This document shows positions 2,918 through 64,000 of a stretch of 64,000 nucleotides of DNA, piece after piece. Made by a program: the position numbers and the translations under genes. Numbering within the stretch: the first letter of the stretch is position 1; every line of letters starts with the position of its first letter. The stretch is taken from NCBI RefSeq assembly GCF_036588685.1, contig NC_086373.1:40858001-40922000 (forward strand). The letters are read 5' to 3'. The stretch is from Mytilus trossulus (Eukaryota). Under the pieces are notes generated by a model. The model did not search any database. It saw only the letters and a program-made list of their open reading frames with translations, and was not told where the DNA came from.

Positions 2918-5900
2918 GGAAATTTATTAGCTAACCTTTGCTACATTTTGTACTTCTCGTTTTGGAGGCCAGTGCCTTAGGAATGACTTGAAAATAATAG
3001 TTCCAATCTTTCTAAAATATAGTGAAAACAATTATTCTGAATTTCATCGATTTAAACTAATTTGTCATTAGAATTAAAAGGTAACAAGTCGTTTAGTTTA
3101 GGTTTGTTAAAGATTAAATGAGCAAAATCCTGCCGGAAGTTATATCTATAATTCTAGTGCGTTTGATGACATTTGTTGTATTCTCTGAATTATATGCCCG
3201 TATCCATGAAGTCAAACCTGCATGTCTTGATTTGGACACTTAAATTCGTGGATAGATCCATCTAGGAAAACCACGAAAATTTTTACTGAACAACTAAAAG
3301 TACTTTCATAGTGTTGGAAATGATTCGTATGATGATATCAACCATATTTACATCCCAACTCCTTTGTTCTAACAGGAGTGATCTGAGTCGGACCACCCCT
3401 ACCAGATTACCCTAGATTCTTTGTTCTACATGGTTTTCTTCTGTTCTGTAACATTTGGCGGGAATTTCGAACACACAATAAAACTTAAAATTATTGATGC
3501 GGAATAACTTTCAAAATTTATGTAGAAAAATATCCACTAAACCAGTAACTATGCGGGGAATCAACATCAAGACCTGAAGCATGTGAAGCCACGATTCATA
3601 CCCCTTCACCAGGACGACTGGATACAAAGTCACTGGTAATTTAACACACGAGGCTCGTAAAGGGCATATACTATATAGTAATATATAAAGTATATTATAA
3701 TTATTGTATGGCATTCTGAACTAGATGTTATTAAGCGTAAACTTTTTCATACAGTTATTCTAGAAAGAGCTGGGATGTAAAATTGTTATCCCACTCGGAC
3801 TGGATGTGGCAGTGTAACTGAAAACAGAAAATAAATGTGAAGAAAAAACGCGATCCCTAAAGATAATTATCAATAATGGTTGTCCTCAAATATAACTCTT
3901 AACTTAGATCACTTATCGATAAAGTTGTATCAAAAATATCTAGTACATGACCACGTCAGAAATCCATAAATTAACGGATTTGAACGGACAGTTCAATAAA
4001 AGTGTGAAATTTTCTAACTAGTATGAAAAACTACAAAAAGCATTTTCAAAGCGGTTTGAGGGAAAATATATTGCAAATGTTACCGGGGACAGCTCAAATT
4101 AAAGTCTGTCCAATACGAATACCAATACTTTATTAAATTAATTATCGGTCCTTAAAAGGCATGTTACATATAATGATTACAAATAGATTTAAATAATAAA
4201 AAACAATAATGACAATGCTCATGATAATATGGATTTAACGATAGCAGTTCTTAAAGTTTTCTTATTGTAAAACATTTATAACAAATTAAAGCCACAATGT
4301 TGCATATTTCGTCATGTTCACAAGACAGAAGCCAAATAAACCTGTTTTCTGTATTAAGATTTTTTAAATTATAGCATATATTTTTAAAGAAGCATGTAAC
4401 ATTACTTGTCGCTGTTGCTCGAATGCTGGACATTTCATCAGAAAATGAATTTCATTCTCAATTGAATTCAAGAACAAAATTTACAATTCTTTTCTAAAGT
4501 TCATTTGGATAAGTTATCAAATAAACAATAACACTTGTATTGAAGCGATTAAGAAATTAAGAAAAGGAAACAATTTTTACCTTCTATCTGTACCTTCCAT
4601 TCTCCTAAATTTTCCCAATTTGTGTATATTCCAATGCTTCTCACTGTAAAAGGATTTGGGTCGGTCAACTCAGCTATAACATTTCTACCAACGATAAGTC
4701 CTTTTCCCATCATTATAACTCCGTGTATAGCACTGATCCAGAATGGTCGGTATTCATCGCATTTACAAACGTCAGGAGTGTCGTAAAGGACGCTTTGCTG
4801 GCTACCCGGTGTAAGTGAATCGTCATTCCGTCTTTGAATAGCTGATTTTAAATTTGTCCAACCACCAATAATAAAATTATACATGGACTTTGAGGAGTCT
4901 TCATCGTCTGAATTCGACATAATAATTGAAACATCTTGACACGCCTTCACCTCAAATGTTATTGTCGTAATTCCGCTTAAATCAAGACCATTTTTGTTGA
5001 TATCAACAACGTAATGCAAAATATCAGCGACTTGCAAAAAACTCTTGTGTCCATTGTTTGGTGTTGTAAATGTATTTTCAATTACCAGTCCTATAAAATA
5101 ATATATATTAACCAATCCAGTTCACTCAGAGTAAGACAGGAAAATATATGATAAACAAGAGGGGATAAGATACTTGTACTAAAGTGGCATTCAAAACAAA
5201 AGAAAAACAGACAGCACCATGACTAGAAGAAGAAAAAGGAATAGACACACGGTACACAAAACATTAAAACGAAAATTGGAAACAACAGGGGAAGAAGCAA
5301 AATTCCATTTACCTCCTAAATTAATTTGCTATGACATACTCTTTACAATTCAGTTTAAAAAGGGGGGGGGGGGGGCACGTTAAGCAGGTAAATTACGGAA
5401 ATGTTTATTAATAAGTCATCGTCTTGATTTTTGTTCGTAGTCCTCAACGCTGTATAAAATTTGAAACTAAGCCCCTTTGGTTTGTTGACTCAAAAAAGAA
5501 AAAGAAAGGACGAACAAGTTTACTTAATACTACGCTACAAACGTATTCATACACATTTTATATTATAGGAAGACAAAACTATACAAAACGGCGTACTACC
5601 AATCAGATAAAAATGTAATTTGTTGATATTGTAGTTCAAATTGGTGTATCTTATTAATTTACTGATTGTAAACTTTTATATAAATTGAGGGTAAGAGTTT
5701 GTCAAATATTTTTGAATGTCGTAGAATATGAAAGCTACATGTATTTATTTTATTCCCATTGGATGTATGTGTTGTGAGACATTGATATGATTATTGTTGC
5801 TTGATTATTTATGCAATTATTTTAAAATTTACGACAGAGAAATGAGACTTGCAGAATTTAGCCTGCAACCGGTCGTTTTACTATACGTATAAAAGTGTGC

Positions 5901-29691: not shown

Positions 29692-30794
29692 TTATATTAA
29701 ACTGTCTGACATTTTAACGACATGGATTTTACCATAATCCTCATTTTTGCCTTTACCGCATCCAATCAATAAATGTCCTTCTGTGTCAAAGCAAACACAA
29801 CTTGGCCTGGTTATGCCCAAGTCTATGAAAATTAACTGCAGTCCAAGTAAATCTCCATATGAATTTATAACATGTAGTGCATCGTTTCCCCTGTCTGCAA
29901 CTACAATGTTATCACTTGCCGTAATAGTGATTCCCACTGGTTGAAATGTTTTCAAATCGTGTTGTCCGTCGTAGATAAACCGCAAGCGGCTATTTCTGTC
30001 TGCAGCTACTATTCTACCATTTTTGTCATTGTCAAAATGATCAATAACATAGAAAACATTTCTAGAATCAGTGCGGATACGTGCTGCATAACTGAACAAT
30101 TTATTGCCTTTTTGGTCGAATTCTAATGTTACTTTCCGTTTGTAATCACTACCGAAATTATAACTTGTCTGACCGAAAAATCATGAACTGGAACCGGTGG
30201 ACCCTGTTCTCTTAATCCAACTATTACCTCATCATCTTTGTTAACATGTATGGCCAAAAATTTCATAGGAGAAGAATCTTACACAGTCTTGACTTCACCT
30301 ACAGATGACAAAATTTGTATTTTGTTGACACCAAATTCTTTTAAAAGTATTTCGCCGGTCTTTTTTAATGAAATGTCAAATATTTTTTTCTTGTACGTCT
30401 GCAATATCTGTTTAGTAGATTTCAAAAGTTTCCCTTTCACAAATTGATTTTTCGGAGACGGGGCAAAACAATACGTAAAGTAAAGTAAATCGTCATCTGA
30501 GCACAGTAGATTGTGAACAGCTGGTAAAATAGTTGTATATGAATTGACAACTGATGAAATAACTACTGACGTTACCTCCTGGGATCCTGATGATGACTTG
30601 CTAATATCCTGAATAGAAACAACTTCATGATCTTGTGTGGAAGGAAGTCCTTGGTGAACGGTAACTTTACAAGAGTTACACATGCGAACACTGCAATCAT
30701 CACATTTCCATTTGATCTGTGATCCTTTGCAAAAATAGCATGAAACTGGTACTTGTGCTTTTCTTATACTTGTAGATTTACCTGATGTCGCCAT
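29692..30794 (-). pseudogene. Intronless B-box + NHL/beta-propeller (TRIM-like) gene with a nonsense codon and a frameshift
   Basis: B-box CYFC..WKCDDCSVRMCNSCKVTVH..HEVV. NHL motifs PVGITITASDNIVVAD and PSCVCFDTEGHLLIG. In-frame TAA at 30279-30281, after which the frame reads on (DSSPMKFLAIHVNKDDEVIVG). A 1-nt shift near 30157 joins to GSDYKRKVTLEFD..LFSYAARI. Confidence 0.88.
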
Positions 30795-32480: not shown

Positions 32481-34686
32481 AATAAAAAAAATGAATATTT
32501 ATGATTTCATCATGTTAATTTCTTTATAACATTTGATGCAGTTGTAATTAGCATATTTATTATACTTCACTTTTATGCCATGTAGATGTTTGCAAACTTT
32601 TTTTCAACAATTTAGTTGTTTATGCTTTTCTGTGACGAGGGCATCAATGAAGATTATTTATATAGCTAACAACATGAACGTAACTCTCTTAAAATGTATG
32701 GAAATATTTAAAAACTGGCCATTACTTCGTGTTCAGATCAAAAGTTTAAATCGACAAATTTTCGGAGTTGCAACGGGTACTTTATGCGCAAATCCATTAT
32801 ATTCTGTAATAAAAATCGAAAAAATCGAAAAATTTAAATTCTGACAAATGAGCTTCGGTAATGATTAAAAATCTGGAGAAAAGACTCTTATAAGATTATC
32901 TTAATTTAGAAAATAAGCCCTATCCACAAAATCCCATGGACCACTTATTTGTCATGTCCTACATTTCCGATCACATCATTATTCTAAGTTCAATATATAG
33001 GTTCTCAATTAATCATTTCCTATCATTTTCACATTTTGTTGAATAAAGATTCGCAACATTTGATTAAATAAATTAATCAAACAATTATTTGAAACTTCTA
33101 TTGAAAATAAAAGGAGATGAATTCGCTTATCTATATTTTTTAGCATTAAAAACAAGAAATTCAAAATTACTATCATATGTTACAACGAATGAACGACAAC
33201 ATGTTATCACGATAACAGGTGTGAACATATACAACCTATAAAGTGGAGGGGTCTTCTTCTGGCGAAATCTTTTAGATTAGAGAGATTAATCGCAGAACCT
33301 ATTTTATGTAGCTGTTCATAGTTTTGATTGGTTTTAACACTTTGAATGTTAAATGTTCAGATAATTTCAATAACAACGTAGAAATAAAAACAACATGGTA
33401 TGTAGTTTGGTCACCTTGTAATTTGCAATATACCTAGGTTTGACAATAATTTGTCATTTTATTGGAAAACAAATGACAATAATGAAGTCATGACGAAAGG
33501 GGTAAAATAAGGAGATTGTTTTATCTAAAGTGAAAGATTTGAACTCTCGATCAGATATCAAGTCTTTAAAGAGATATTTTTTTTGGGTTAAAATATCAAT
33601 ATTTTAATTGCTAATATCTAGAGAGTTGAATAAGTGCTATGAGAAATTTTCACTCTTCACATTTCAACAGTCAAGAAAGTAGTAAATTCAGAAAAGTGTT
33701 GGTAGTTTCCAGATTGGCAATACATTACTGTATGAGTTCCTGGTAGAAAAGGAAACAAACTATACAAACGTACATATTTCACACACACATATACACAACA
33801 GCATCATGTCCTATAGAGAAGAAATCCTGCAAGAACAAGAAAAAAAATATAAGTTGATTTACCATCACAGAATAATGAAAACATTTAACAATAATGAAGA
33901 GAAGATTTCTATTAGGTCAGAAGTGGTTTATCTGTCGTAAGTTCCCGTATTATTTCATATAAAACACGTACTTAATTTAAAGTCATATGAAACGATTTTT
34001 TTTCAAATTATGATGTGTTTGAAGTTATTGAACCAAATTGAATGCATGAATATATACTATAACCAAGTCCTGTATGCACATTTTTTTTTTCTATCAACAG
34101 TAGTAGAACTTAATTTTAGTATTGTATTGTTAGTCTTCTTTCAATTTTCTTCTTTAATCATGTTTATTCAAAATTAATTGTCAAGCGAAATATACATAAA
34201 AATGAAAACCACTAAAACCAACACACGATTGTATATTTTATCAGTAATCTTGTAAGTTAGTACATTTTCTAAACTTTCCAACAGCAGTTACACTTTGTTT
34301 GTAAATATTGACCCTTGAAAATATGTCAGAAATGAAATAACTGTAGTGAATCATAAAAATATGCAGGTGACACAATTGTAACATAAGTTTCTTTTTCACA
34401 TACAGTCCCATTTTATGAACTTTTGAGATTATTGTCGGAAAGATTAGAACACGAAATGGACAACATCTGACATCAATTGATGTGACGTGGTTATTGCTAA
34501 TCAGAAATTGTACATACTAATGAGTTTGATTTATTTATATTTTCTTCATATTAACCCCTTACGTGGTGCGTTTGTCCTCATCCTTTCCAATTATTTTGTT
34601 CAGGGATTAGTTGACTAAGAAATTAAATCTTGGTCAGATGATGTAGCTCCATGAAGTGTGTCAAGAGATTTGTGGTTACTAATATG

Positions 34687-34720
34687 TATATAAAGTCGCA
34701 AACATAAGCTTGTGTCACTC
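34687..34720 (+). promoter_or_regulatory. Candidate core promoter (TATA + Inr) of the PTN/MK-repeat gene
   Basis: TATATAAA at 34687 and TCACTC with its A at 34717 (30 nt downstream), 35 nt before the ATG. Confidence 0.55.
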
Positions 34721-34751
34721 CAGTTTTCTTTTGTCTTTAATAAGCTACAAT

Positions 34752-37700
34752 ATGAAAAACGTGTTTGTTATTTTTGTCGTCGTCCTGGTAGCTACAGTCG
34801 CTGCAAAAAAGGGATGGAAAATCCGACCACGACAACGTAAGTCTAAAGTTTAACAAGCATTTTAATACGTTTAGTGTAAGCATTAAAATTTTAACTACCT
34901 TTACAATCATTTTAATTAGTTGAACAATTATTCAAATTACTATAACTAGCATTTCTATTATTTAGTAAGCATTTTTGTTAGTTTATCAAGCATTTCAATA
35001 AGTTTAACAAGTATTCAAATTACTATAACTAGCATTTTTATAAGTTTAACAAGCATTTTAATTACCAAAATTACTACATAGTGCACCAGATGGTCAGTCC
35101 AGGGAAATAAGCAAGACTGTCTTTCATAAAAATTTGTAAAATAATTCAAAATCAAAAGCAGCTGACCTTGAAATATATAAAATAAAATACAATCAATAAA
35201 GAAAACGTCCTGATTTGATTTTACAAATGAACAATAAAATAGCACTTTATAAGTTTGTAGCGTCCGGGGCGCTTTTCAGTATTAACGCTCAAACCACAGG
35301 CTTATAAAACACGAATACACCAGACGCTGTATGACCAAAATGGGGAAAACAAAACAATGTTTCTTGTATCTTAAGTCAACATTGATGGAGGGATTGAGTA
35401 TATGTGTTTCTAAATAGTTTCGAAATTCATTAAAAGAAAATTCAAGAAAAATAGGTTATACATTGTGTCAGTAATGAAAAACTCCAATAAGAACTTTTTC
35501 GATGCCGAATAAAGAAGATATGTAGTAAAATGTATGTTATATACTAGTACGTATTTTGCCTGATATATTAAGATCTTGTTTGAATTATTATAAAGGATAA
35601 ATATTGAACATATAATGTGTCAAAATATTAGTATTTGAACAAAATAGGACTTGTTTACTTAACGTTTTTATTTTAAACCTTGAAAATGATTAAACCAACT
35701 TTTCAGAATGCAAATATGATAAAAGTGCATGGAGTGACTGTGACACAACAACAAATACCGTCAGCCGAGTTCTGACTCTAAAATCAGGCAAGGAAGGATG
35801 CCAACAGACACAGAATCAAACTATTACATGTGATAGGTTTGATAGGCTACAAGCATGGAAAATAAAAAAGGCGGAAAGTAGAAGAGAATTGCAGGAAAAG
35901 AAACATCAAAGAAAAGAACGAAAACAAGAGATGAAAGAGAATAAACAGCTTGTGAAAGAGCAACTTAAAAGTAAGAACATATATGAGAATGATTGAAAAA
36001 TAGTATGTTACACATAAAATATTGTTATTTACAAACATAATCAGAATTTTTACTATTTTGATGCAGGTTGTGATTTCTAAAACAATTGCTTCCTAATAAA
36101 TCAAGCTTTAGAATTCATTTCGGTAAGAGTACGTATCGTATATATAGACAGAAAAATTTAGAATATATTGTAAAAATGAGTAATTAAAAATATTTATGTA
36201 ATTTGTTTTCGAGTCCTCTTATCTTTAGATAACCCAATTTCTACTTAATTGAAGCCAATTAAAAATATATGACTGTATATCAAACAACATAAGTAATACT
36301 GATTTTATTCTTCTAACTTTTCCTCTTAAGTTTAAAAAGTAAAATCACAAAAATACTGAACTCAGAGGAAAATCAATTTGGAAAGTCCATAATCACATGG
36401 CAAAATCAAAAAACAAAACGCATCAAAAACGAATGGACAAGAACTGTCATATTCCTGACTTGGTACAGGCATTCTCAAATGTAGAAAATGGTGGATTAAA
36501 CCTGGTTCTATAGCGCTAACCCTCTCACTTTAATAACAGTCTCATCAAATTCCGTTACATTTACATGATGCGTTAAATAAACAGTCACAATCAATAAAAT
36601 AGTCAAAATATGGGAACATCAGTCATCATCGTATAACAATTTAACAGGACACAACAACATCTACTATCTACGAACACATGGATTGATTTGAGTGTCTGAC
36701 GTCAGAAAAATTATATACGTCACATAAATTTGTTGTTCAATGTGCATACAAACAATTTTAAATTTTTTTTTTCCCCATAGGCAATGTACGCATACAGAGT
36801 TAAAAAATCAAAAGTATGTAAGAATAAATTACAGAAATAGACCGAGATTCAAACTAGTTCAAAAGTTATACATAGAATTTATGAGAATCCAAAAATTGTC
36901 AATTCCACTACGCCATTGATTGATTTTGACGTTTGTGGTTCAACGTATATAGTAATTCATAATAGAAATTTATCATAATGACATATTATAGACAAATATC
37001 ATACTGACGGGATCTTTTAAAGTACAGAGTCACGTTATAAGCACAAAAGAAATACAAAGAGTCACATATACAAAACAAATCACCAAAAAATTAAAGCCAA
37101 TACAAACACATTGACGAGATGTATAAGTACCGAGCCACGTCAAACGGATATCACATAAAACCATTCAACAGTAAAAGTAATCTTAATAATAGATCAAAAA
37201 CAAATAAAAGAACAATAAAACATGTTGTTAAGATGATACACAACATCAGTACGCAGAATCTATACATCAAGACCATCGTGTATTATTTGAGAAGTTGATA
37301 CGGAATATTTATCAACAAGGTCTTGGTACCTTCCGATGAACTTTTTTAGAAAAAGGACGAGACGTTCTTTGACATACCCCTGGTTCATCAACTTTCTACT
37401 CAGACACTGATGACGTTTTACAAAGTCTGAGTAGGAGCTGCAAGCTCTTGAATATCGAATAAGTTGGGAAATATATATCCCATATGCAGGTGAAGTTGGT
37501 ATATTGCTACTAAGGTGGGGGAAATTTATAATTTCGAAATTAAAATCGTCTCGTTTGTCATAGATTCTGGTACTGAGATGACTGTGTAAGTCAAATTCGA
37601 GATATAAGTCTAAAAATGAGGCGGAGGAAGCCGTGTCTGTTGTTTCTTTAATCTCGAGTTCTGGGGGATATATTAAAACGATTCTCCGATACTAAGAATA

Positions 37701-40425
37701 TAATTGAACGATTTTTTTTATCTTTATAATTATCTAAATCGGTATGTATTAAATAAAACTTCGTTATTCAACAACATACCATCAAATGCTACTTCTAGGA
37801 TCAGCCTAGCGAGTTCTTAATGTGATATTTTTTCTTTAAATTTGAGCAAGGTTTTCCATGATTTTGGGAACAAAATTTGAGATAAAAATAGGGGTACACC
37901 GACTTCGTTTTGTCACTATAGAAATCTCAATTTCGTGTTTTATGAAATAATCTCGCCCTTCATTTCTGTAGACCTACGTCTCAGAATCTTCTACCTACTG
38001 AATAAAAGATAATTTCTATTCATCCTGAAAATGAATGAAACATTTGCCACTGGCTTACAAACCAAAAAACAACCAATCATATTGAAATAAACAGCATAGC
38101 AAATAAATGATAATTGTTTCCTGTCTACGACACAGTTGTCTATTGTATAAGTAAACTCTTTTGATAAAAGGATTCTTCTCTCTTTGATCAGTATATAGGT
38201 AAACAAAAAAGTGGTGCAAACATATTTCTAATTTTGGATTTTCTGGATTTACATTAATCAGAGATGTTCACTCAAAACTTAACATTGTTAGAGCGATGAT
38301 GAATGAGAACAATCGGGAACCTTTAGACATCAGTATTTTATTTATGTAAACGAATGAATGTTTTGTTTGGTTTGCATTCGAATTGGTACATGCATGGAGT
38401 CAATATACGTGATTTATTAATTTGTAGTATCTTTAGTAATATTGCGATCATGTTTTTTATAAAGGATGTAGTTATGAACACAGTGATTGGAGTGAGTGCG
38501 ATCAAGCAACAAATACAGTAACCCGAAATTTTACTTTGAGTGAAGGCGAACAGGGTTGTGAACAATCACACACTATCACCATAACTTGTGACAAACTAAA
38601 CAGAATACAGACATGGAAAGCAAAGAAAAGGGACCGTAAACAGAATAGAATAGACGAAAAATTGCAAATGAAGCAAGAGAGAAAAGAGAAAAGAAAGCTT
38701 GAAAAAGAACAAAGACTTAGTATGTATTGATTTTAAAATTTAATTCACTACAGTTGTTTATTCGGTATTATCAATCTATGATGGAATACAACCAGCTTTT
38801 TCATCATACAAATAATTAAGGTTAAAATGTACTTAGAAATGTCATATTCGAATTGTCAGGAGCGTACCAGATGAAATATATTTGATGAACGCATGGAAAG
38901 TACACTCTTGTTGGAAGGGGGTTGCCATCTTTACTTGGTTTTTTTTATATTTGTTGTGGGTTTTTTTAACATTATTAAAACGCTCAAACATTGATATTCA
39001 AACTTCTTTGTGAAATATGTTAATTCTTTGTATTTTTTCTCATCACAATTTATTTCAGAATGCAAATATGACAAGGAAGACTGGAGTGAATGTGATAACA
39101 CAACAAACATAGTAACCCGAGTTATGACATTAAGGGACGGAGAAGAAGAAGAATGCGAACCAATAATAAATGTCATAATTTCATGTTCAAAGTTTGAGCG
39201 TATTCAACAGTGGAAAGCAAGAAAAATGGAGCGCAAGAATGAAAAAAAGGAGAATAAAATGTTTATTAGAGAACAGAAAAATATGTGGAAAGAAAATAAA
39301 AAGATAGTGAAGGAACAACGTAGACGTAAGTAAATAAGTTAACAAAACAAAACAAACAAACAAAAAGTGACATAAAACAAAATTCAAATGATAAAAAGAG
39401 TAACTGCCAGTAACAATTAAGTTCTCACTGACACAAGTATAAGTGGATTCCTGGATTACAAAATGCACATCCTAATGATTTAAAGCTTAATTTTATAGAA
39501 TAAACAATGAAATCAATGCAATTTAACGAACAAGATACGTCTACAGATCAAAAACAGTCTTTTACAATGGACAGATGAGACTCCCACAGGGTACCCTCCT
39601 CAGGTCGCAAGGTCGCTTTTAAATTCGTCGAGAGGTCGTTTTTAATGGAAATGTACAGGTCGCAGGTCGTTTTTCCCAACTCAGAGGACGGAAGTCGGTC
39701 GGAGGTCGTTTTTTTCCAAATTTAACAGGTCGCAGGTCGTTTTTAGAAGGCCCTCAGGTCGGAAGTCGCCTCTAAAAAGCCCAGAGGTCGCAGGTCGTTT
39801 TTTACCCTGCGGGAGCCTCACAGATGTCTATACAATATGTCAAGCTCTTAATCACCTCCTTGTTAAAAAAATGATGTTTTAGTCATGTCTGGTTATTCGT
39901 TCAAGTAAATAGAATGCTTTTTAATTTTAAAAAAGTGTTTTGAAGTTAACCTTGTTAGCTTAAAGGATATCCCATTTAATTGATTAACCGTGATGTTATA
40001 ATTCACTAACAAAAACTTCCCATACCGAATTTAAAAGATTTCAGAATAATTCTTAATCAGCAAACACTTTCTCTTATTTTTTGGTTTCCGTTGCATTCAC
40101 GGATCGACTCTACATATTCAAAGACAGGGCTTTAAGAACCGCCGATTGTATTATATTCTATGAATATAGGTTTATATTGACATGTTTATTTTCAGTCGGA
40201 TGCAGTTTTGATGTTACCTTTAGTGAATGTGATCTTACAACTAACATGGTTACAAAATCGTACATACCAACAACAGATGATGATGATTCATGTGAAAACA
40301 GGTCATTTGAATATTCATGTGATTTGCATGAAAGATTAATGGAAAAGAAGAGAAAACGTCAAGACAAAAGAGGCAACAGAAAAATAAATAGGAAGGAATT
40401 TAGACAGCAGAGGCTTCTGATCTAA
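34752..40425 (+). CDS. Secreted protein with four pleiotrophin/midkine-like domains and basic helical linkers, 366 aa; exons 34752-34836, 35707-35970, 38465-38719, 39059-39325, 40196-40425
   Basis: Signal peptide MKNVFVIFVVVLVATVAA. All four introns are GT-AG and phase 1, and the joined ORF is 1101 nt with no internal stop. Modules such as CKYDKSAWSDCDTTTNTVSRVLTLKSGKEGCQQTQNQTITC match the midkine C-domain spacing C-x9-C-x19..21-C-x9-C. AATAAA at 40795. Confidence 0.9.
36333..37677 (-). mobile_element. 5'-truncated Penelope-like retroelement (family C), antisense in intron 2
   Basis: Open frame ~37676-37259: LIYPPELEIKETTDTASSASFLDL..RIYDKRDDFNFEIINFPHLSSNIPTSPAYGIYISQLIRYSRAC..KLMNQGY..HDGLDV*, then a ~920-nt 3' tail. 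Confidence 0.88.
39577..39819. mobile_element. MITE with internal AGGTCG(C) repeats in intron 4
   Basis: ACAGAT|GAGACTCCCACAGGGTA ... TACCCTGCGGGAGCCTC|ACAGAT (6-bp TSD, or 4-bp CAGA if the termini are TG..CA). Confidence 0.85.
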
Positions 40426-43229
40426 ACTAAAGACTTTTGAATAATGATCAAGAAGAAATCCACTTTTCATCATGTACAATGTATAAAGACTGAGAAAAAA
40501 GTTAGTTCAACCCTGCGTCAAATTGTTTTCTATACATATGAAAGTGACAGAGAACATGTGACTATGTACTTTGGTGGTTTACTAATATCAATTGTGAAAA
40601 TAGGCTGTTATTGAAATCTAGATAAATTGCAATCTAAATATAATACATGAATATCTATATGTATAAAAATTCCATAATATATTAGAATTGTGGTTCTTTG
40701 ACAGCAATAATTGATAGCCTCTTTTTTTTTTAAATCTGTAGAAACTAAAGACGACAGTCATTTTGCGTTTCTTTTTTTAAATCAAACTTCTTTTAATAAA
40801 TAGTGTACAAGTCTTCTTTGACTGCCATTTTTTATCTCAGTTGTTGGAATCATACGCAATACTTGTGTTGCTGAAGTCTTGTATTAGAAGTTGATGATGT
40901 GATTTCCGGATCTTCTTTTATGGTAGGCTGTTTCTGTTAAATCGACCATCGAAATATACATAAGTCCTTTCTACCTTGAACTCGCACACAATTCGAAATA
41001 AGATACTTTAAAAGATGATTTGTTTCTTCTAAACCGCTTTATGAGATTTAAACATTTAAACTACTGTTGCTAAAAAACTGTTAAGTTACAACTTCCTGAT
41101 GATGACTATTCACTGAATGTGGATTCGCATAACGGGTGATAAATGCAGGCCCGGAAACACTTGCGCACCCGGTTTTAGTTCATGCGGTTCCCTCATTTTA
41201 TTTTTGTGTTTACCTTCATTTGTATATTTTTGTTTGGTTTATAAGATTTGAACACCGGTTAACAACTGTGGCCTCTAAATGATCTCTAAGCAGTAACATC
41301 ATTGATGTTGAGAAATTTCCTTCTTTCCAAAAGATCTTACCTAAGTCGCTTCCTAGAGACAAGATTAGTTTTATTTAACTAATAGACATAGAGAGAAAAA
41401 TCCATGCTGAAGCGATTTCCTGGATCAACCTTCAACGCCCAAAACCGAATATAGTATGAAAATCCAAGGATGTATAAGAAACGAAACATTTGAAGAGCTA
41501 TATGAACAGAATGGTCATAAACAATAGCCAAATCCATCTAAAGCTTAATGAGGGAGTTGAAACCTTTATAATTTCTTACAAACCTGCTCGTGCATTTTTC
41601 ATTGTTATTCAACGCAAAATAATTATCTAAGATACCTGGGACGATCTCATTTCACAAAGGATTTCTATTGTCTACTTATTGTACCTCGAACTTATTTACC
41701 CGGTGTAGGTCTTTAAGTTGAGGTTCAATATACTTAAAGTTAATCGGGCATGACTAATTAGATACACCCTCTTAAAATCAGGGGGTCCGAACTAGGATCG
41801 AGAAAAACATCCAGCAAAATACCATAATTTACAATTTTAGATTTTTTTTTATTTAAAGTGCTTTTGGTTGCTTAAATATCTCCGATCAATAATCGAACGG
41901 TATTTTGTGGAAATTATATGTCCCGAATCGGGAGATGTTGGCTGCAATAGGAATTTATTTATTAAAAAGGCCATATCTCCTTTACTTAAAGTGACCGTTT
42001 TTTATCATAAATTCATGACGTTTTGTTTTTGGCATTCGTCTATCGTGAAGAAAAAAGAGAGAAGGAGGCCGCTAATAGCTTAACTTACGAGTTCGATCAT
42101 AATCTATTCTATTATGGCATACGTTTTACCTCTAGCGATCGCTCTGTCTTATTTTAAAAAGTGCCACTCAAAATTAGTAAGCATTTGCTTCAGATTGATA
42201 CACTTTGCATCGAATCGTGAATATGCATGACATATTCGCCACTGGACACAAAGGAGCAATAAATTAATCAGCTTCGTTTTAGTGATGTATAATCATTTGT
42301 CCTCAGTTGATTATCATCTCAAACAGTTTTCCAATTTTTATATATTTCATTTGTATTTACATTTGAATTTTTAAGCGTAAATCTTAGCATTTCTTCCATC
42401 ATTTTTTCCTTTGCATTTAATCTTTTTGTATTTAACATTAAAAAAACGTTGTCGTAGTACACATCAGCGGTTACATTGTATCCTTTCCAGCAAAACTAAT
42501 ATAGGGGAGGGGGTAAGAACAGAAGAAAAATCTTCATTGAGTGGCTATAACTCTTATATTGAAGCGTACAATGACTGCTGTCTCGTCTAGGTGACAACAT
42601 TTGCTGTTTCAAGTTTATTTATATCTCAGACTGGTATAATAGTTGTAATAAAAGCCCCCCAAAAAATGAAAAAAAAATGTTGACAACAATTTATACACTT
42701 ATTTTGGGCGTTTCATTTTTTTTTTATATTGTCTTGCTGATCGGTTTTGTTATAGTTTTTTTTTCATCTACTATAATTGTCCATGCGACTTATTTGAAAA
42801 GTTTTAGATGACCTTACTTGTTGTTTCAATCATTCAACTCGTGCGTAGATCGTCTTTCCCTCTAATGTTTTTAAGGTATAAAGAATGTGAAATTCTCACT
42901 ACACCAGGCATCGGATATACATTCCAATTATATTTCGATCGGACAAAGCTGCGTATTTATATATCCGATAAGCAAAACGAACGCAACCATTTAGCAAGGT
43001 ATACTGTGGGACGGGAGAGGTCAAGATATGTTTATATTTCTACACCCAAGTGAATCGTTTGGTTTTAAATAAAAGGAGATAAAGGTATACATTAATGCGA
43101 CAGCAACCAAAAGAAACAGATAAATCAAAATATTTAGAGTCAACATTCAGTTTTATTTTTTATAGAAAGATGCGTATACAGAATAATAAGCTCAAAACCG
43201 ACCCATGACTAAATAATAGTTATACGGAG

Positions 43230-61448: not shown

Positions 61449-62139
61449 TTAAGCGTAAACGTTTTTCATACAGTTATTCTAGAAAGAGCTGGGATGTAAA
61501 ATAGATATCCCACTCGGACTTGTGTCACGTCAGAAATTTATAGATTAAAAACGGACAGTTCAATAAAAGTTTGAAATTTTCTAACTAGTATGAAAGACTA
61601 CAAAAAGCATTTTCAAAGCGCTTTTAATGGAAAATATATTGCAAATGTTACCGGGGACATCTCAAATTAAAGTCTGTCCAATACGAATACCAATACTTTA
61701 TTAAACCAATTATCGGCCCTTAAAGGGCATGTTACATATAATGATTACAAATAGAAAAACACAATAATGACAATGCTTATGATAATATGGATTTAACGAT
61801 AGCAGTTCTTAAAGTTTTCTTATTGTAAAACATTTATAACAAATTAAAGCCACAATGTTGCATATTTCGTCATGTTCACAAGACAGAAGCCAAATAAACC
61901 TGTTTTCTGTATAAAGATTTTTTAAATTATAGCATATATTTTTAAAGAAGCATTTAACATTACTTGTCGCTGTTGCTCAAATGCTGGACATTTCATCAGA
62001 AAATGAATTTCATTCTCAATTGAATTCAAGAACAAAATTTACAAATTCTTTTCTAAAGTTCATTTGGATAAGTTATCAAATAAACAATAACACTTGTATT
62101 GAAGCGATTAAGAAATTAAGAAAAGGAAACAATTTTTAC

Positions 62140-62649
62140 CTTCAATCTGTACCTTCCATTCTCCTAAATTTTCCCAATTTGTGTATATTCCAATGCTTCT
62201 CACTGTAAAAGGATTTGGGTCGGTCAACTCAGCTATAACATTTCTACCAACGATAAGTCCTTTTCCCATCATTATAACTCCGTGTATAGCACTGATCCAG
62301 AATGGTCGGTATTCATCGCATTTACAAACGTCAGGAGTGTCGTAAAGGACGCTTTGCTGGCTACCCGGTGTAAGTGAATCGTCATTCCGTCTTTGAATAG
62401 CTGATTTTAAATTTGTCCAGCCACCAATAATAAAATTATACATGGACTTTGAGGAGTCTTCATCGTCTGAATTCGACATAATAATTGCAACATCTTGACA
62501 TGCCTTCACCTCAAATGTTATTGTCGTAATTCCGCTTAAATCAAGACCATTTTTGTTGATATCAACAACGTAATGCAAAATATCAGCGACTTGCAAAAAA
62601 CTCTTGTGTCCATTGTTTGGTGTTGTAAATGTATTTTCAATCACCAGTC
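62140..62649 (-). CDS. FAMeT-domain exon, copy 2 (signal-peptide exon expected just beyond the window)
   Basis: 510-nt exon with the same splice sites as 4581-5090 and one amino-acid difference. Confidence 0.88.
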
Positions 62650-64000
62650 CTATAAAATAATATATAACCAATCCAGTTCACTCAGAGTAAGACAGGAAAA
62701 TATATGATAAACAAGAGGGGATAAGATACTTGTACTAAAGGGGCATTCAAAACAAAAGAAAAACAGACAGCACCATGACTAGAAGAAGAAAAAGGAATAG
62801 ACACACGGTACACAAAACATTAAAACGAAAATTGGAAACAACAGGGGAAGAAGCAAAATTCCATTTTCCTCCTAAATTAATTTGCTATGACATACTCTTT
62901 ACAATTCAGTTTAAAAAAGGGGAGGGCACGTTAAGCAGGTAAATTACGGAAATGTTTATTAATAAGTCATCGTCTTGATTTCTGTTCGTAGTCATCAACG
63001 CTGTATAAAATTTGAAACTAAGCCCCTTTGGTTTGTTGACTCAAAAAAGAAAAAGAAAGGACGAACAAGTTTACTTAATACTACGCTACAAACGTATTCA
63101 TACACATTTTATATTATAGGAAGACAAAACTATACAAAACGGCGTACTACCAATCAGATAAAAATGTAATTTGTTGATATTGTAGTTCAAATTGGTGTAT
63201 CTTATTAATTTACTGATTGTAAACTTTTATATAAATTGAGGTCAAATATTTTTGAATGTCGTAGAATATGAAAGCTACATGTATTTATTTTATTCCTATT
63301 GGATGCATGTGTTGTGAGACATTGATATGATTATTGTTGCTTGATTATTTATGCAATTATTTTAAAATTTACGACAGAGAAATGAGACTTGCAGAATTTA
63401 GCCTGCAACCGGTCGTTTTACTATACGTATAAAAGTGTGCGATATACATATAACATACAATGCTGTTTACTGCTTTAATTATGAGCGAGCGGCAATATTA
63501 AAATTAGCGTGTTTAGTTTCTTCTTCGCAGTCCGCGTTCATACAATTTATTAATAATAAAAAAAAAATTATTTTGTTCTGTTTTAGATGAAAATTCAGAT
63601 TTTGGATTTAATATCAATAAAATCTGTAGCTTTGACTTTTATGTCGATAATCTACAAAGCTAAAAGAGTATTCGGGGTTTTTCTCTGGGAAATAAATGGT
63701 TCAAACTTATAGAGATAAAGTTAAGATTTTACAGGTTGTTCTCGCATATGAAACCTCTCTAGCAGTAAAAACTTTCTCAAATTTTATTTAAAACAACTTC
63801 CCGAATACTAGAACATTCTCAAAATCAAATCAAAATGACGTCACAAATATTCCTACTAAGTACTCAGTTGAAAAGACATATCCAATTGCATTTCAATTGC
63901 AATGAACAACATATGTTGATAAACAATGTAATTATTATTGTTCTCAACAAAACCTTTGAATTTCATGATGAAACAAAAAAGAAAAAGAAAAACTGATAGC

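Follow-up and report, generated by a model that had tools for sequence, protein, structure and literature searches.

A mussel gene encoding four pleiotrophin/midkine C-type modules, each followed by a basic segment predicted to be helical

The 64,000-nucleotide stretch of the Mytilus trossulus genome analyzed here (the window; contig NC_086373.1, 40,858,001 to 40,922,000) almost certainly contains an intact five-exon gene whose product carries four homologues of the C-terminal domain of pleiotrophin and midkine (PTN/MK). Each homologue is followed by a long K/R/E/Q-rich tail that is predicted to be helical. Taking all observations together, we favor, with modest confidence, the explanation that the protein is an exported, rigid and multivalent polycation that would bind polyanions.

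Reading of the sequence and exon-by-exon translation gave one signal-peptide exon and four exons with one module each, all on the forward strand. The coding part of exon 1 (34752..34836) starts with a methionine, a 15-residue hydrophobic core and the sequence VAA|KK, which we judged by eye to be a putative signal peptide (34752-34805), probably cleaved after VAA and followed by a short basic stretch; the exon ends in phase 1 at the donor GTAAGT. Modules 1 to 4 are encoded by exon 2 (35707..35970), exon 3 (38465..38719), exon 4 (39059..39325) and exon 5 (40196..40425, closed by a TAA stop), the last being of a divergent terminal type. Each of the four introns lies in phase 1 and is bounded by GT..AG; the donors are, in order, GTAAGT, GTAAGA, GTATGT and GTAAGT, and at every acceptor a pyrimidine-rich tract precedes the AG. 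The translations sum to 366 amino acids (28+1+87+1+84+1+88+1+75), the length given by the first-pass annotation of this DNA, and confirm its outline of a signal peptide plus four exons that each encode a four-cysteine module. The reading frame, all 16 cysteines and all splice sites are intact in the window copy. The 3' UTR extends beyond position 40500, and a candidate TATA box (TATAAA, 34689..34694, forward strand), read from the sequence, lies about 60 bases 5' of the ATG.

Transcript evidence consisted of intron-less contigs drawn from four public runs, which represent four studies and three organism codes. The junction 34836>35707 is present in contigs of runs X6 and X8, and the junctions 35970>38465 and 38719>39059 in contigs of all four runs; the skipped introns have GT..AG ends. 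One contig of 1312 nt (run X6, record 14) spans exons 2, 3, 4 and 5 contiguously and thereby supports the fourth junction, 39325>40196. These contigs show that the gene type, as distinct from the exact window copy, is transcribed and spliced exactly as modeled.

The cores encoded by exons 2-5 follow the pattern C-x9-C-x19/20-C-x8/9-C, and their tails measure 46, 43, 46 and 34 residues in modules 1-4, matching the earlier estimate of about 45 residues in modules 1-3 and fewer in module 4. Modules 1-3 recognize one another in tblastn searches within the window with E values of 1e-19 to 1e-24, module 4 matches them at 6e-8 to 4e-5, and the rest of the 64-kb window holds no further module-like match below E 0.06. 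The modules are clearly related to one another, and the array grew through successive duplications of a symmetrical phase-1/phase-1 exon carrying one core and one tail, the origin that had been proposed from the sequence.

Modules 1-3 scored 34.6, 35.4 and 43.8 bits against PTN_MK_C (PF01091; gathering threshold 25.3 bits), which was the only Pfam family found. Module 4 had no Pfam match to PF01091; it aligns to modules 1-3 with all four cysteines in register, and its terminal type forms a clade of its own (98/96 support) across family members with two, three or four modules. When PDB sequences were searched with a module profile, only midkine and pleiotrophin were matched (zebrafish midkine a and b, human pleiotrophin and the human midkine C-domain; E 2e-9 to 2e-6). 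Because the Pfam, PDB-profile and fold matches (see below) agree, we assign the modules to the PTN/MK C-domain; the evidence supports true homology and bears out the likeness noted in the first pass. PTN_MK_N (PF05196) matched none of the exons, and a six-frame search did not find it anywhere in the genome. The midkine/pleiotrophin architecture, a PF05196 N-domain with three disulfides followed by one C-domain, is thus absent, and the protein does not belong with the canonical two-domain cytokines of the midkine type.

AlphaFold models module 3 (pLDDT 95.3) with strands at residues 2-5, 17-26 and 35-41 and a helix at 42-87. The top four Foldseek matches of this model in the PDB (8voi_B, 2lut, 2luu and 2n6f) are all pleiotrophin or midkine, with probabilities of 0.99-1.00 and rmsd values of 1.9-3.2 Å; the best, 8voi_B, superimposes to 1.9 Å over 45 columns with a target-normalised TM of 0.68. 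TSR domains rank after these C-domains. The M. edulis ortholog P0151 is 95-96% identical; in its full-length model (pLDDT 84.8), helices span residues 70-117, 158-202, 244-290 and 332-365, each abutting the next strand, and module 4 comprises three strands and a helix. The helix pLDDT is mostly 80-95, and the first three helices are 45-48 residues long.

From these models, each module is predicted to be a three-stranded, two-disulfide sheet whose 45-48-residue helix leads directly into the following module; the domain type is thrombospondin-repeat-like. Each tail is predicted with high confidence to be a single alpha-helix from the last cysteine of its module to the first cysteine of the next, and the whole would form a stiff chain of small beads about 7 nm apart (46 residues x 0.15 nm). 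The beads-on-a-rod architecture suggested earlier is therefore supported as a prediction, and we consider the helical-rod shape likely. On K/E-rich sequence of low complexity, AlphaFold is known to model long helices with high confidence. Opposite-charge i/i+4 pairs number 1-5 per tail, at a net tail charge of +8 to +11; this is fewer than expected for a classical ER/K single helix and counts against our confidence in the rod. Hydrophobic residues make up 17-25% of the helices and occupy 3-6 of 10-13 heptad a/d positions, and the conserved ones lie mostly at the helix ends, at +3, +6 and +9 after the last cysteine and 5-7 before the next.

The net charges of the cores of modules 1-4 are +1, -6, -7 and -7, with a pI of 4.1-4.2 for modules 2-4, and the tails of modules 1, 2 and 3 carry +8, +10 and +11, respectively. 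The sheet cores are thus neutral to acidic, unlike the basic cores of midkine and pleiotrophin, and the positive charge resides on the helices. Judged by core charge, with the residues mapped only by eye on the PDB-profile alignment, the basic clusters of the C-domain sheet of the heparin/chondroitin sulfate type are absent here. The suggestion of a glycosaminoglycan-binding growth factor consequently finds no support at the domain level: with cores neutral to strongly acidic, only the helices could account for any polyanion binding. The strongly basic tails make heparin or glycosaminoglycan binding of the protein plausible. Comparison with the C27 paralogs yielded dN/dS values of 0.21-0.27, equal for cores and tails, which marks the tails as constrained sequence, not filler.

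Vertebrate midkine and pleiotrophin (PF01091; PDB 1mkc, 2n6f, 2lut, 2luu and 8voi) have the same four-cysteine pattern, CKY..W..CD start and three-stranded sheet as the mussel modules; in common, too, are secretion, which for the mussel protein follows from its putative signal peptide, and a basic sequence after the domain. The mussel protein differs in having four C-type modules rather than one, in lacking an N-domain, and in its long predicted helices, where midkine and pleiotrophin have a flexible hinge and disordered tails. Its neutral to acidic cores also contrast with the vertebrate pI 11 protein and its conserved basic clusters, and in pleiotrophin the binding of chondroitin sulfate draws in part on the basic tail and the hinge (PMC9363672). 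Drosophila Miple1 and Miple2, secreted invertebrate family members rich in basic residues, bind heparin in vitro despite incomplete conservation of the vertebrate heparin-binding residues (PMC4224452). The mussel protein resembles the Miple proteins by description only. We know of no 45-residue helical spacers in them.

Stand-alone ER/K-rich helices (SAH), which are stabilized by dense i/i+4 E-K/R pairs, act as fixed-length spacers between folded domains in myosin X and caldesmon. The helices predicted for the mussel protein, which would likewise stand alone and serve as spacers, are long and charged with few hydrophobics, a functional analogy rather than homology; they differ in that they would be extracellular, are net strongly basic instead of balanced, and have only the 1-5 i/i+4 pairs per tail given above.

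The four-module architecture is shared by M. edulis, M. coruscus, M. californianus and M. galloprovincialis, and occurs also in transcript assemblies at 40-60% identity. When 1.84 billion representative proteins were searched, the matches included predicted proteins with up to 10-11 PTN_MK_C modules, some of them from the bivalves Mya and Dreissena. The earlier baseline, only two such domains in vertebrate midkine/pleiotrophin and Drosophila Miple, was therefore incomplete. Module number varies among bivalves and is not what makes the mussel protein unique; the long helical spacers set it apart. Packed arrays such as Mya arenaria LOC128238294, Dreissena polymorpha DPMN_042771 and others with up to 10-11 modules carry the same module in tandem behind a signal peptide, but their modules are basic, lie 50-58 residues apart on short K/R linkers without long helices and, in the arrays examined, are followed by an extra CFFG.WG...C domain. 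Packed-array genes are also present in the mussel genome, on contig C10. The M. trossulus "midkine-like" protein P0018 (contig C10) and a two-module gene on contig C6 (M. galloprovincialis LOC143080457, P0164) each combine at least one core and long charged helix with a divergent terminal module. With two or three modules, and with no helix on the first module of P0018, they have the look of earlier steps in this series of exon duplications. The subfamily appears to be lineage-restricted, with recent copy-number changes.

Relatives are named "Pleiotrophin/Midkine C-terminal domain-containing protein" in UniRef, and the 366-aa M. edulis counterpart is named "golgin subfamily A member 6-like protein 26" in RefSeq. 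Golgins are cytoplasmic coiled-coil proteins with golgin domains and no signal peptide. We reject this identity, as Pfam finds only PTN_MK_C, a putative signal peptide is present and the predicted helices have no heptad seam; the name, we infer, reflects the K/E/Q-rich composition. It is misleading and hides these genes from searches of mussel data for midkine-like factors. Of the view that the architecture was undescribed, one part stands, since we found no paper on this protein in the literature, and the other does not, since the M. edulis gene model is already public.

In the mechanism that we tentatively propose from the sequence, the protein would be exported and act outside the cell as a rigid, multivalent polycation. 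Positive charge would have moved from the sheet, where it lies in midkine and pleiotrophin, to the helices (+8 to +11 each), and the sheets would have become acidic (-6 to -7). Binding of polyanions would then fall to the helices rather than the cores; the partners may be sulfated glycans in the matrix or in mucus, or the surfaces of microbes, and the alternation of acidic beads with basic rods could also favor head-to-tail self-association. A bolder version, which we regard as rather unlikely, is that of a mussel-invented architecture in which TSR-like beads sit at fixed steps of about 7 nm on stand-alone basic helices; such a block polyampholyte could self-assemble or set spacing on polyanionic matrices in a specialised secretion, and duplication of one phase-1 exon would adjust how many modules (2, 3 or 4) it has. 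If the predicted shape is true, a growth-factor domain would have been re-used as a structural bead, with its charge inverted and the ligand-binding charge placed on rigid helical spacers; to our knowledge, most known single-helix "rulers" of this kind belong to intracellular proteins. The subfamily would also provide a clean, datable case in which a protein was lengthened by duplicating one symmetrical exon, with two-, three- and four-module members and recent copies in one genus. We consider the weight of the finding moderate, because the gene model is public and the function is predicted from sequence and models.

Other functions can be envisaged for such an array. If the protein were a polyprotein precursor cut at basic residues before each module, it would yield four antimicrobial-peptide-like products, each consisting of a small disulfide core and a cationic helix. 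The first cysteine follows a K or R in modules 2 and 3, RR-L-G precedes module 4, the tails contain many dibasic pairs, and midkine and pleiotrophin are bactericidal (PMC9363672). However, the junctions show no conserved convertase motif across homologues (LKR, RLK, RLR, LER, KLK, RRLG, KKLG), the predicted helix is unbroken to the residue before the cysteine, the conserved hydrophobics 5-7 before it suggest a packed, not exposed, junction, and purifying selection is equal in the whole tail and the cores, all of which makes processing highly improbable. An oligomeric structural or matrix protein of byssus, shell, mucus or egg coat, assembled through coiled-coil pairing of the helices or through docking of acidic beads onto basic rods of neighbors, would suit the block alternation of charge (cores -6/-7, helices +8 to +11) and the several gene copies. 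The summed exon contig depth, 2e4 to 1.9e5 in run X1 versus 5-176 in the three others, would fit a secretory gland, but such depth is a poor measure of expression. With hydrophobics at 3-6 of 10-13 a/d positions no coiled-coil seam is evident, and the composition seems to be without the DOPA, Gly, His or Asp-rich signatures generally known from byssal and shell proteins; we hold this reading to be improbable. It is very unlikely, finally, that the protein is a midkine/pleiotrophin-type signaling ligand whose four C-domains engage receptors or proteoglycans multivalently. Its modules share homology with the receptor- and GAG-binding C-domain and adopt the same fold in the models, and it is putatively secreted, but the cores are not basic, PF05196 finds no N-domain in protein or genome, and apparent lineage restriction with recent copy-number change is a pattern more usual for effector or structural genes than for conserved cytokines. 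The "midkine-like" gene on contig C10 and the packed-array genes are better candidates for the ancestral role.

Compatible with any of these functions is the somewhat unlikely case that the window copy is silent or decaying and that the transcripts stem from a near-identical twin 73 kb upstream in the same genome. Two further copies lie on another contig, and a downstream copy has already decayed to a pseudogene. At the diagnostic sites 38601 and 39177, the two covered by the reads table among the exon sites that separate window copy and twin, every contig in all four runs has the letter of the twin or ortholog and none that of the window; the runs come from other individuals or species than the assembly, however, and the window letters may be private alleles. 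The window copy has three private amino-acid changes, among them one that abolishes an N-V-T sequon in module 3, but its frame, cysteines and splice sites are undamaged. Comparison with the twin by blastn and inspection of the break points further revealed a 1335-base insertion in intron 2 (36338..37672) that is absent from the twin and flanked by repeated TTAAAA. The insertion, which matched no Rfam family, is probably a transposable element; very many contigs from each of the four runs cover its left part and the adjoining flank on that side, as fits a dispersed repeat.

The window gene comprises five exons on the forward strand (34752-40425, +), as established by reading the sequence and translating it exon by exon. 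The product of exon 1 (34752-34836, +) begins with methionine and a hydrophobic core of 15 residues; cleavage probably follows VAA, after which comes a short basic segment. Each of the following exons encodes one module, in which a four-cysteine core of 40-42 residues is followed by a tail rich in Lys, Arg, Glu, and Gln; the tails measure 46 residues in module 1 (exon 2; 35707-35970, +), 43 in module 2 (exon 3; 38465-38719, +), 46 in module 3 (exon 4; 39059-39325, +), and 34 in module 4 (exon 5; 40196-40425, +). Each of the four introns is a phase-1 intron with a GT donor and a pyrimidine-rich acceptor ending in AG; the codons that they split encode Q, R, K, and L. Summing the translated exons yields the 366 residues that the first-pass annotation had given for the spliced product. 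In tblastn searches, modules 1-3 find one another with E-values of 1e-19 to 1e-24 and module 4 with E-values of 1e-5 to 6e-8, and no other module-like match in the 64-kb window is better than 0.06; judged by their sequences, the four modules are mutually related, well beyond chance.

Pfam family PF01091 (PTN_MK_C) recognizes modules 1, 2, and 3 with 34.6, 35.4, and 43.8 bits, respectively, against a cut-off of 25.3. The proposed membership in this family is thus borne out by Pfam for three modules; module 4, which is too divergent, finds no Pfam match, though it aligns with the other three with all four cysteines in register. A profile built from 14 module cores of the M. trossulus genome and searched against all PDB chains finds only five sequences, with E-values of 2e-9 to 2e-6: midkine a and midkine b of zebrafish, the C-domain of human midkine, and two chains of human pleiotrophin, one being its C-domain (8voi) and the other the full-length protein (2n6f). 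An AlphaFold model of module 3, calculated with 37 aligned modules, has a mean pLDDT of 95.3 and displays strands at residues 2-5, 17-26, and 35-41, followed by one unbroken helix (42-87). Its four best Foldseek matches in the PDB, all with probabilities of 0.99-1.00, are 8voi_B, a pleiotrophin C-domain (target-normalised TM 0.68; rmsd 1.9 Å over 45 columns), then midkine a, midkine b, and pleiotrophin, with thrombospondin type 1 repeats next; the E-values are just 0.01-0.06, which is the expected size for a 45-residue domain. A protein-atlas search returned PTN_MK_C and TSP1 clusters only, with scores below 0.9. Because Pfam, the PDB profile, AlphaFold, and Foldseek agree, the concern that the modules might fold unlike pleiotrophin and midkine can be set aside, and we hold the gene and its assignment to this family to be very nearly certain.

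The shape of the whole protein was modeled on P0151, the 366-residue M. edulis ortholog, whose identity in module 3 is 95%. AlphaFold, supplied with nine aligned homologues, reached a mean pLDDT of 84.8 and placed helices at residues 70-117, 158-202, 244-290, and 332-365, each running from the last cysteine of a module to the first strand of the next. Hydrophobic residues make up 17-25% of these helices and fill 3-6 of 10-13 heptad a/d positions, a count that makes a classical coiled coil unlikely. Most of the conserved hydrophobic positions are +3, +6, and +9 counted from the last cysteine (an F/L..I/L..W motif) or, as LV or IV, 5-7 residues ahead of the next cysteine. The helix ends are therefore predicted to pack on the flanking sheets and the charged middle parts to be exposed, resulting in a rod with beads. 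Sequences rich in Lys and Glu are prone to over-confident helix prediction, and the tails contain few i/i+4 salt-bridge pairs. Modeling a two-copy P0151 complex yielded no verdict (score 0.00) and speaks neither for nor against self-association.

The electrostatics set the protein apart from its vertebrate relatives. Pleiotrophin (pI 11) bears conserved clusters of basic residues on each of its two domains; its hinge is flexible and its tails are disordered, and it binds chondroitin sulfate and heparin through the C-domain, hinge, and tail (PMC9363672). In contrast, the cores of the window gene are neutral to acidic, with net charges of +1, -6, -7, and -7 for modules 1-4 and a pI of about 4.1-4.2 for modules 2-4, whereas the tails carry +8 to +11. 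Given these values, the charge by which the vertebrate domain binds glycosaminoglycans appears to have moved from the sheet to the helices. Moreover, midkine and pleiotrophin possess an N-domain, but PF05196, which describes it, finds no match in the exons of the window gene or anywhere in the genome. Considering the models, the window gene is an array of midkine/pleiotrophin C-domains with inverted core charge and predicted long helical spacers.

Searching 1.84 billion representative proteins with the core profile gave 434 matches, 31 of them below 1e-30, with the largest family members containing up to 10-11 modules. Four modules are hence not exceptional, and the two-domain baseline assumed in the first-pass annotation is incomplete. 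The largest proteins, of the packed type (P0001-P0006 and P0011) and with Mya arenaria and Dreissena polymorpha as named examples, have basic modules 50-58 residues apart, short K/R linkers, and a terminal extra CFFG.WG domain, whereas the window gene represents the long-spacer form. This form is rarer, and its named members are all from Mytilus (edulis, galloprovincialis, coruscus, californianus, and trossulus). Among relatives from transcript assemblies, which share 40-60% identity, P0157 and P0158 have four modules, P0016 and P0159 three, with a first helix of double length (about 70-85 residues), and P0028, P0163, and P0164 two. In P0016 and P0159, the second core has seemingly been lost and both tails kept, which is odd, as a single exon encodes each core together with its tail in Mytilus. 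In a tree of 34 modules, a terminal module type stands apart from all others (98/96 support) and Mytilus module 2 joins module 2 of P0157 (83/78), the remaining branches being unresolved on 55 columns. These sequences fit growth of the family from a putative two-module ancestor by duplication of an internal core-plus-helix exon.

In the M. trossulus genome (1.30 Gb, 541 contigs), where the window occupies C1:40858001-40922000, PF01091 has 19 exon-level matches. Located 73 kb upstream, an intact twin (C1:40819334-40823640; L020:3334-7640) differs by three amino acids and is 95-98% identical at the DNA level, also in its introns and flanks; this indicates a recent segmental duplication. About 9 kb past the window end, a decayed third copy (C1:40931307-40934180; L021:4307-7180) has stop codons that interrupt modules 1 and 2, lacks cysteines of modules 2 and 3, has lost 25 residues by deletion, and ends in a broken exon; its exon 1 was not found. 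Two intact tandem four-module copies with 86-89% amino acid identity to the window gene are located at C27:3262001-3285000 (L022, L023) on a contig of 4.08 Mb, which may be a distinct locus or another haplotype; one of the copies is RefSeq LOC134700373. Compared with these copies, dN/dS is 0.21-0.27 and equal in cores and tails, so the tails are constrained sequence. Further PF01091 matches belong to a two-module gene on C6 and to three-module and packed-type genes on C10, the contig of the 'midkine-like [Mytilus trossulus]' entry. Exons at C10:10139915-10150788 (L017, L007), one of them containing stop codons, form a packed basic PTN_MK_C array ending in a CFFG.WG...C domain, probably the mussel counterpart of the 8-11-module Mya and Dreissena proteins.

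Part of the window-gene stretch is present in 24 public runs, many with about the word share expected for exons alone. Contigs were aligned to the stretch from four runs, representing four studies and three organism codes. In contigs of these runs, the joints 34836>35707, 35970>38465, and 38719>39059 are exact and the skipped sequence is bounded by GT..AG, and a 1312-nt contig (X6 record 14) spans exons 2-5 contiguously and thereby also supports 39325>40196. The joining of the exons, which the first-pass annotation had left to be checked, is thus found in intron-less contigs. These are best explained as cDNA, the RNA nature of the runs being a software guess. Summed exon contig depth, which is not an expression measure, was 2e4 to 1.9e5 in run X1 versus 5-176 in the others. 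The window copy and its twin differ at six exon positions; at the two of these for which contig letters are listed, 38601 and 39177, every contig of all four runs has the twin's letter, so that splicing and expression are established for the gene type rather than for the exact window copy. At 39110 and 39176-39177 in module 3, the window copy encodes Ile, in contrast to the Thr of its twin, the C27 copies, P0151, and the M. coruscus and M. californianus orthologs; an N-V-T glycosylation sequon is lost through one of these changes, and the changes may be private to the window copy.

Intron 2 of the window copy contains a 1335-base insertion (36338-37672) that is absent from the twin and has a TTAAAA repeated at its two sides. 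Thousands of contigs from each of the four runs cover its left part (up to about 36640) and the sequence immediately preceding it, which fits an abundant dispersed repeat; no match to the insertion was found in Rfam. Tandem repeats occur in intron 1 (34888-35064, period 21/42/83 bases) and intron 4 (39725-39802, a 29-base unit containing CAGGTCGCAGGTCG). The latter region collects contigs from all four runs and is hence probably part of a repeat family. An Rfam search of 33000-42000 gave no match.

As for function, the protein would be secreted as a stiff multivalent polycation whose helices bind extracellular polyanions, to which the acidic beads may add self-association. Drosophila Miple offers an analogy that makes polyanion binding by the helices plausible: its heparin-binding residues are not fully conserved, yet it binds heparin via basic composition (PMC4224452). 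We put forward the polycation reading as a tentative one, somewhat more apt to fail than to hold. It is possible that the product is a polyprotein cut at its basic junctions, but the junction residues are not conserved and the predicted helices are continuous and anchored at their ends. A coiled-coil or self-assembling matrix protein is likewise possible. A midkine-like signalling role appears the least likely, because the cores are acidic, the N-domain is missing, and the copy dynamics are specific to the lineage. The gene itself is confirmed as first observed, and its original interpretation is partly supported.

In RefSeq, the same 366-residue protein of M. edulis is named 'golgin subfamily A member 6-like protein 26', whereas UniRef labels relatives 'Pleiotrophin/Midkine C-terminal domain-containing protein'. 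A golgin identity was rejected, as the protein has a signal peptide but neither a golgin domain nor a heptad seam; we regard the name as a compositional artefact. The 'golgin' of a Mytilus transcriptome paper proved to be golgin A4. A full-text literature search found no paper on midkine/pleiotrophin-like mussel proteins or multi-module forms. The architecture is thus undescribed, as first suggested, in the sense that this search found no characterising paper, but its gene model is public and annotated. With the gene model already in databases and module arrays known elsewhere, the finding is of moderate weight.

Elsewhere in the window, open frames at 4552-5115 (-) and 62111-62671 (-) match Methyltransf_FA (the Pfam farnesoic acid O-methyltransferase family) with 82 bits each; since they lie 57.5 kb apart, they suggest that the duplicated block includes other genes. 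Adjacent open frames at 29695-30794 (-) encode a B-box zinc finger and an NHL repeat and are probably exons of a TRIM-NHL-type gene.
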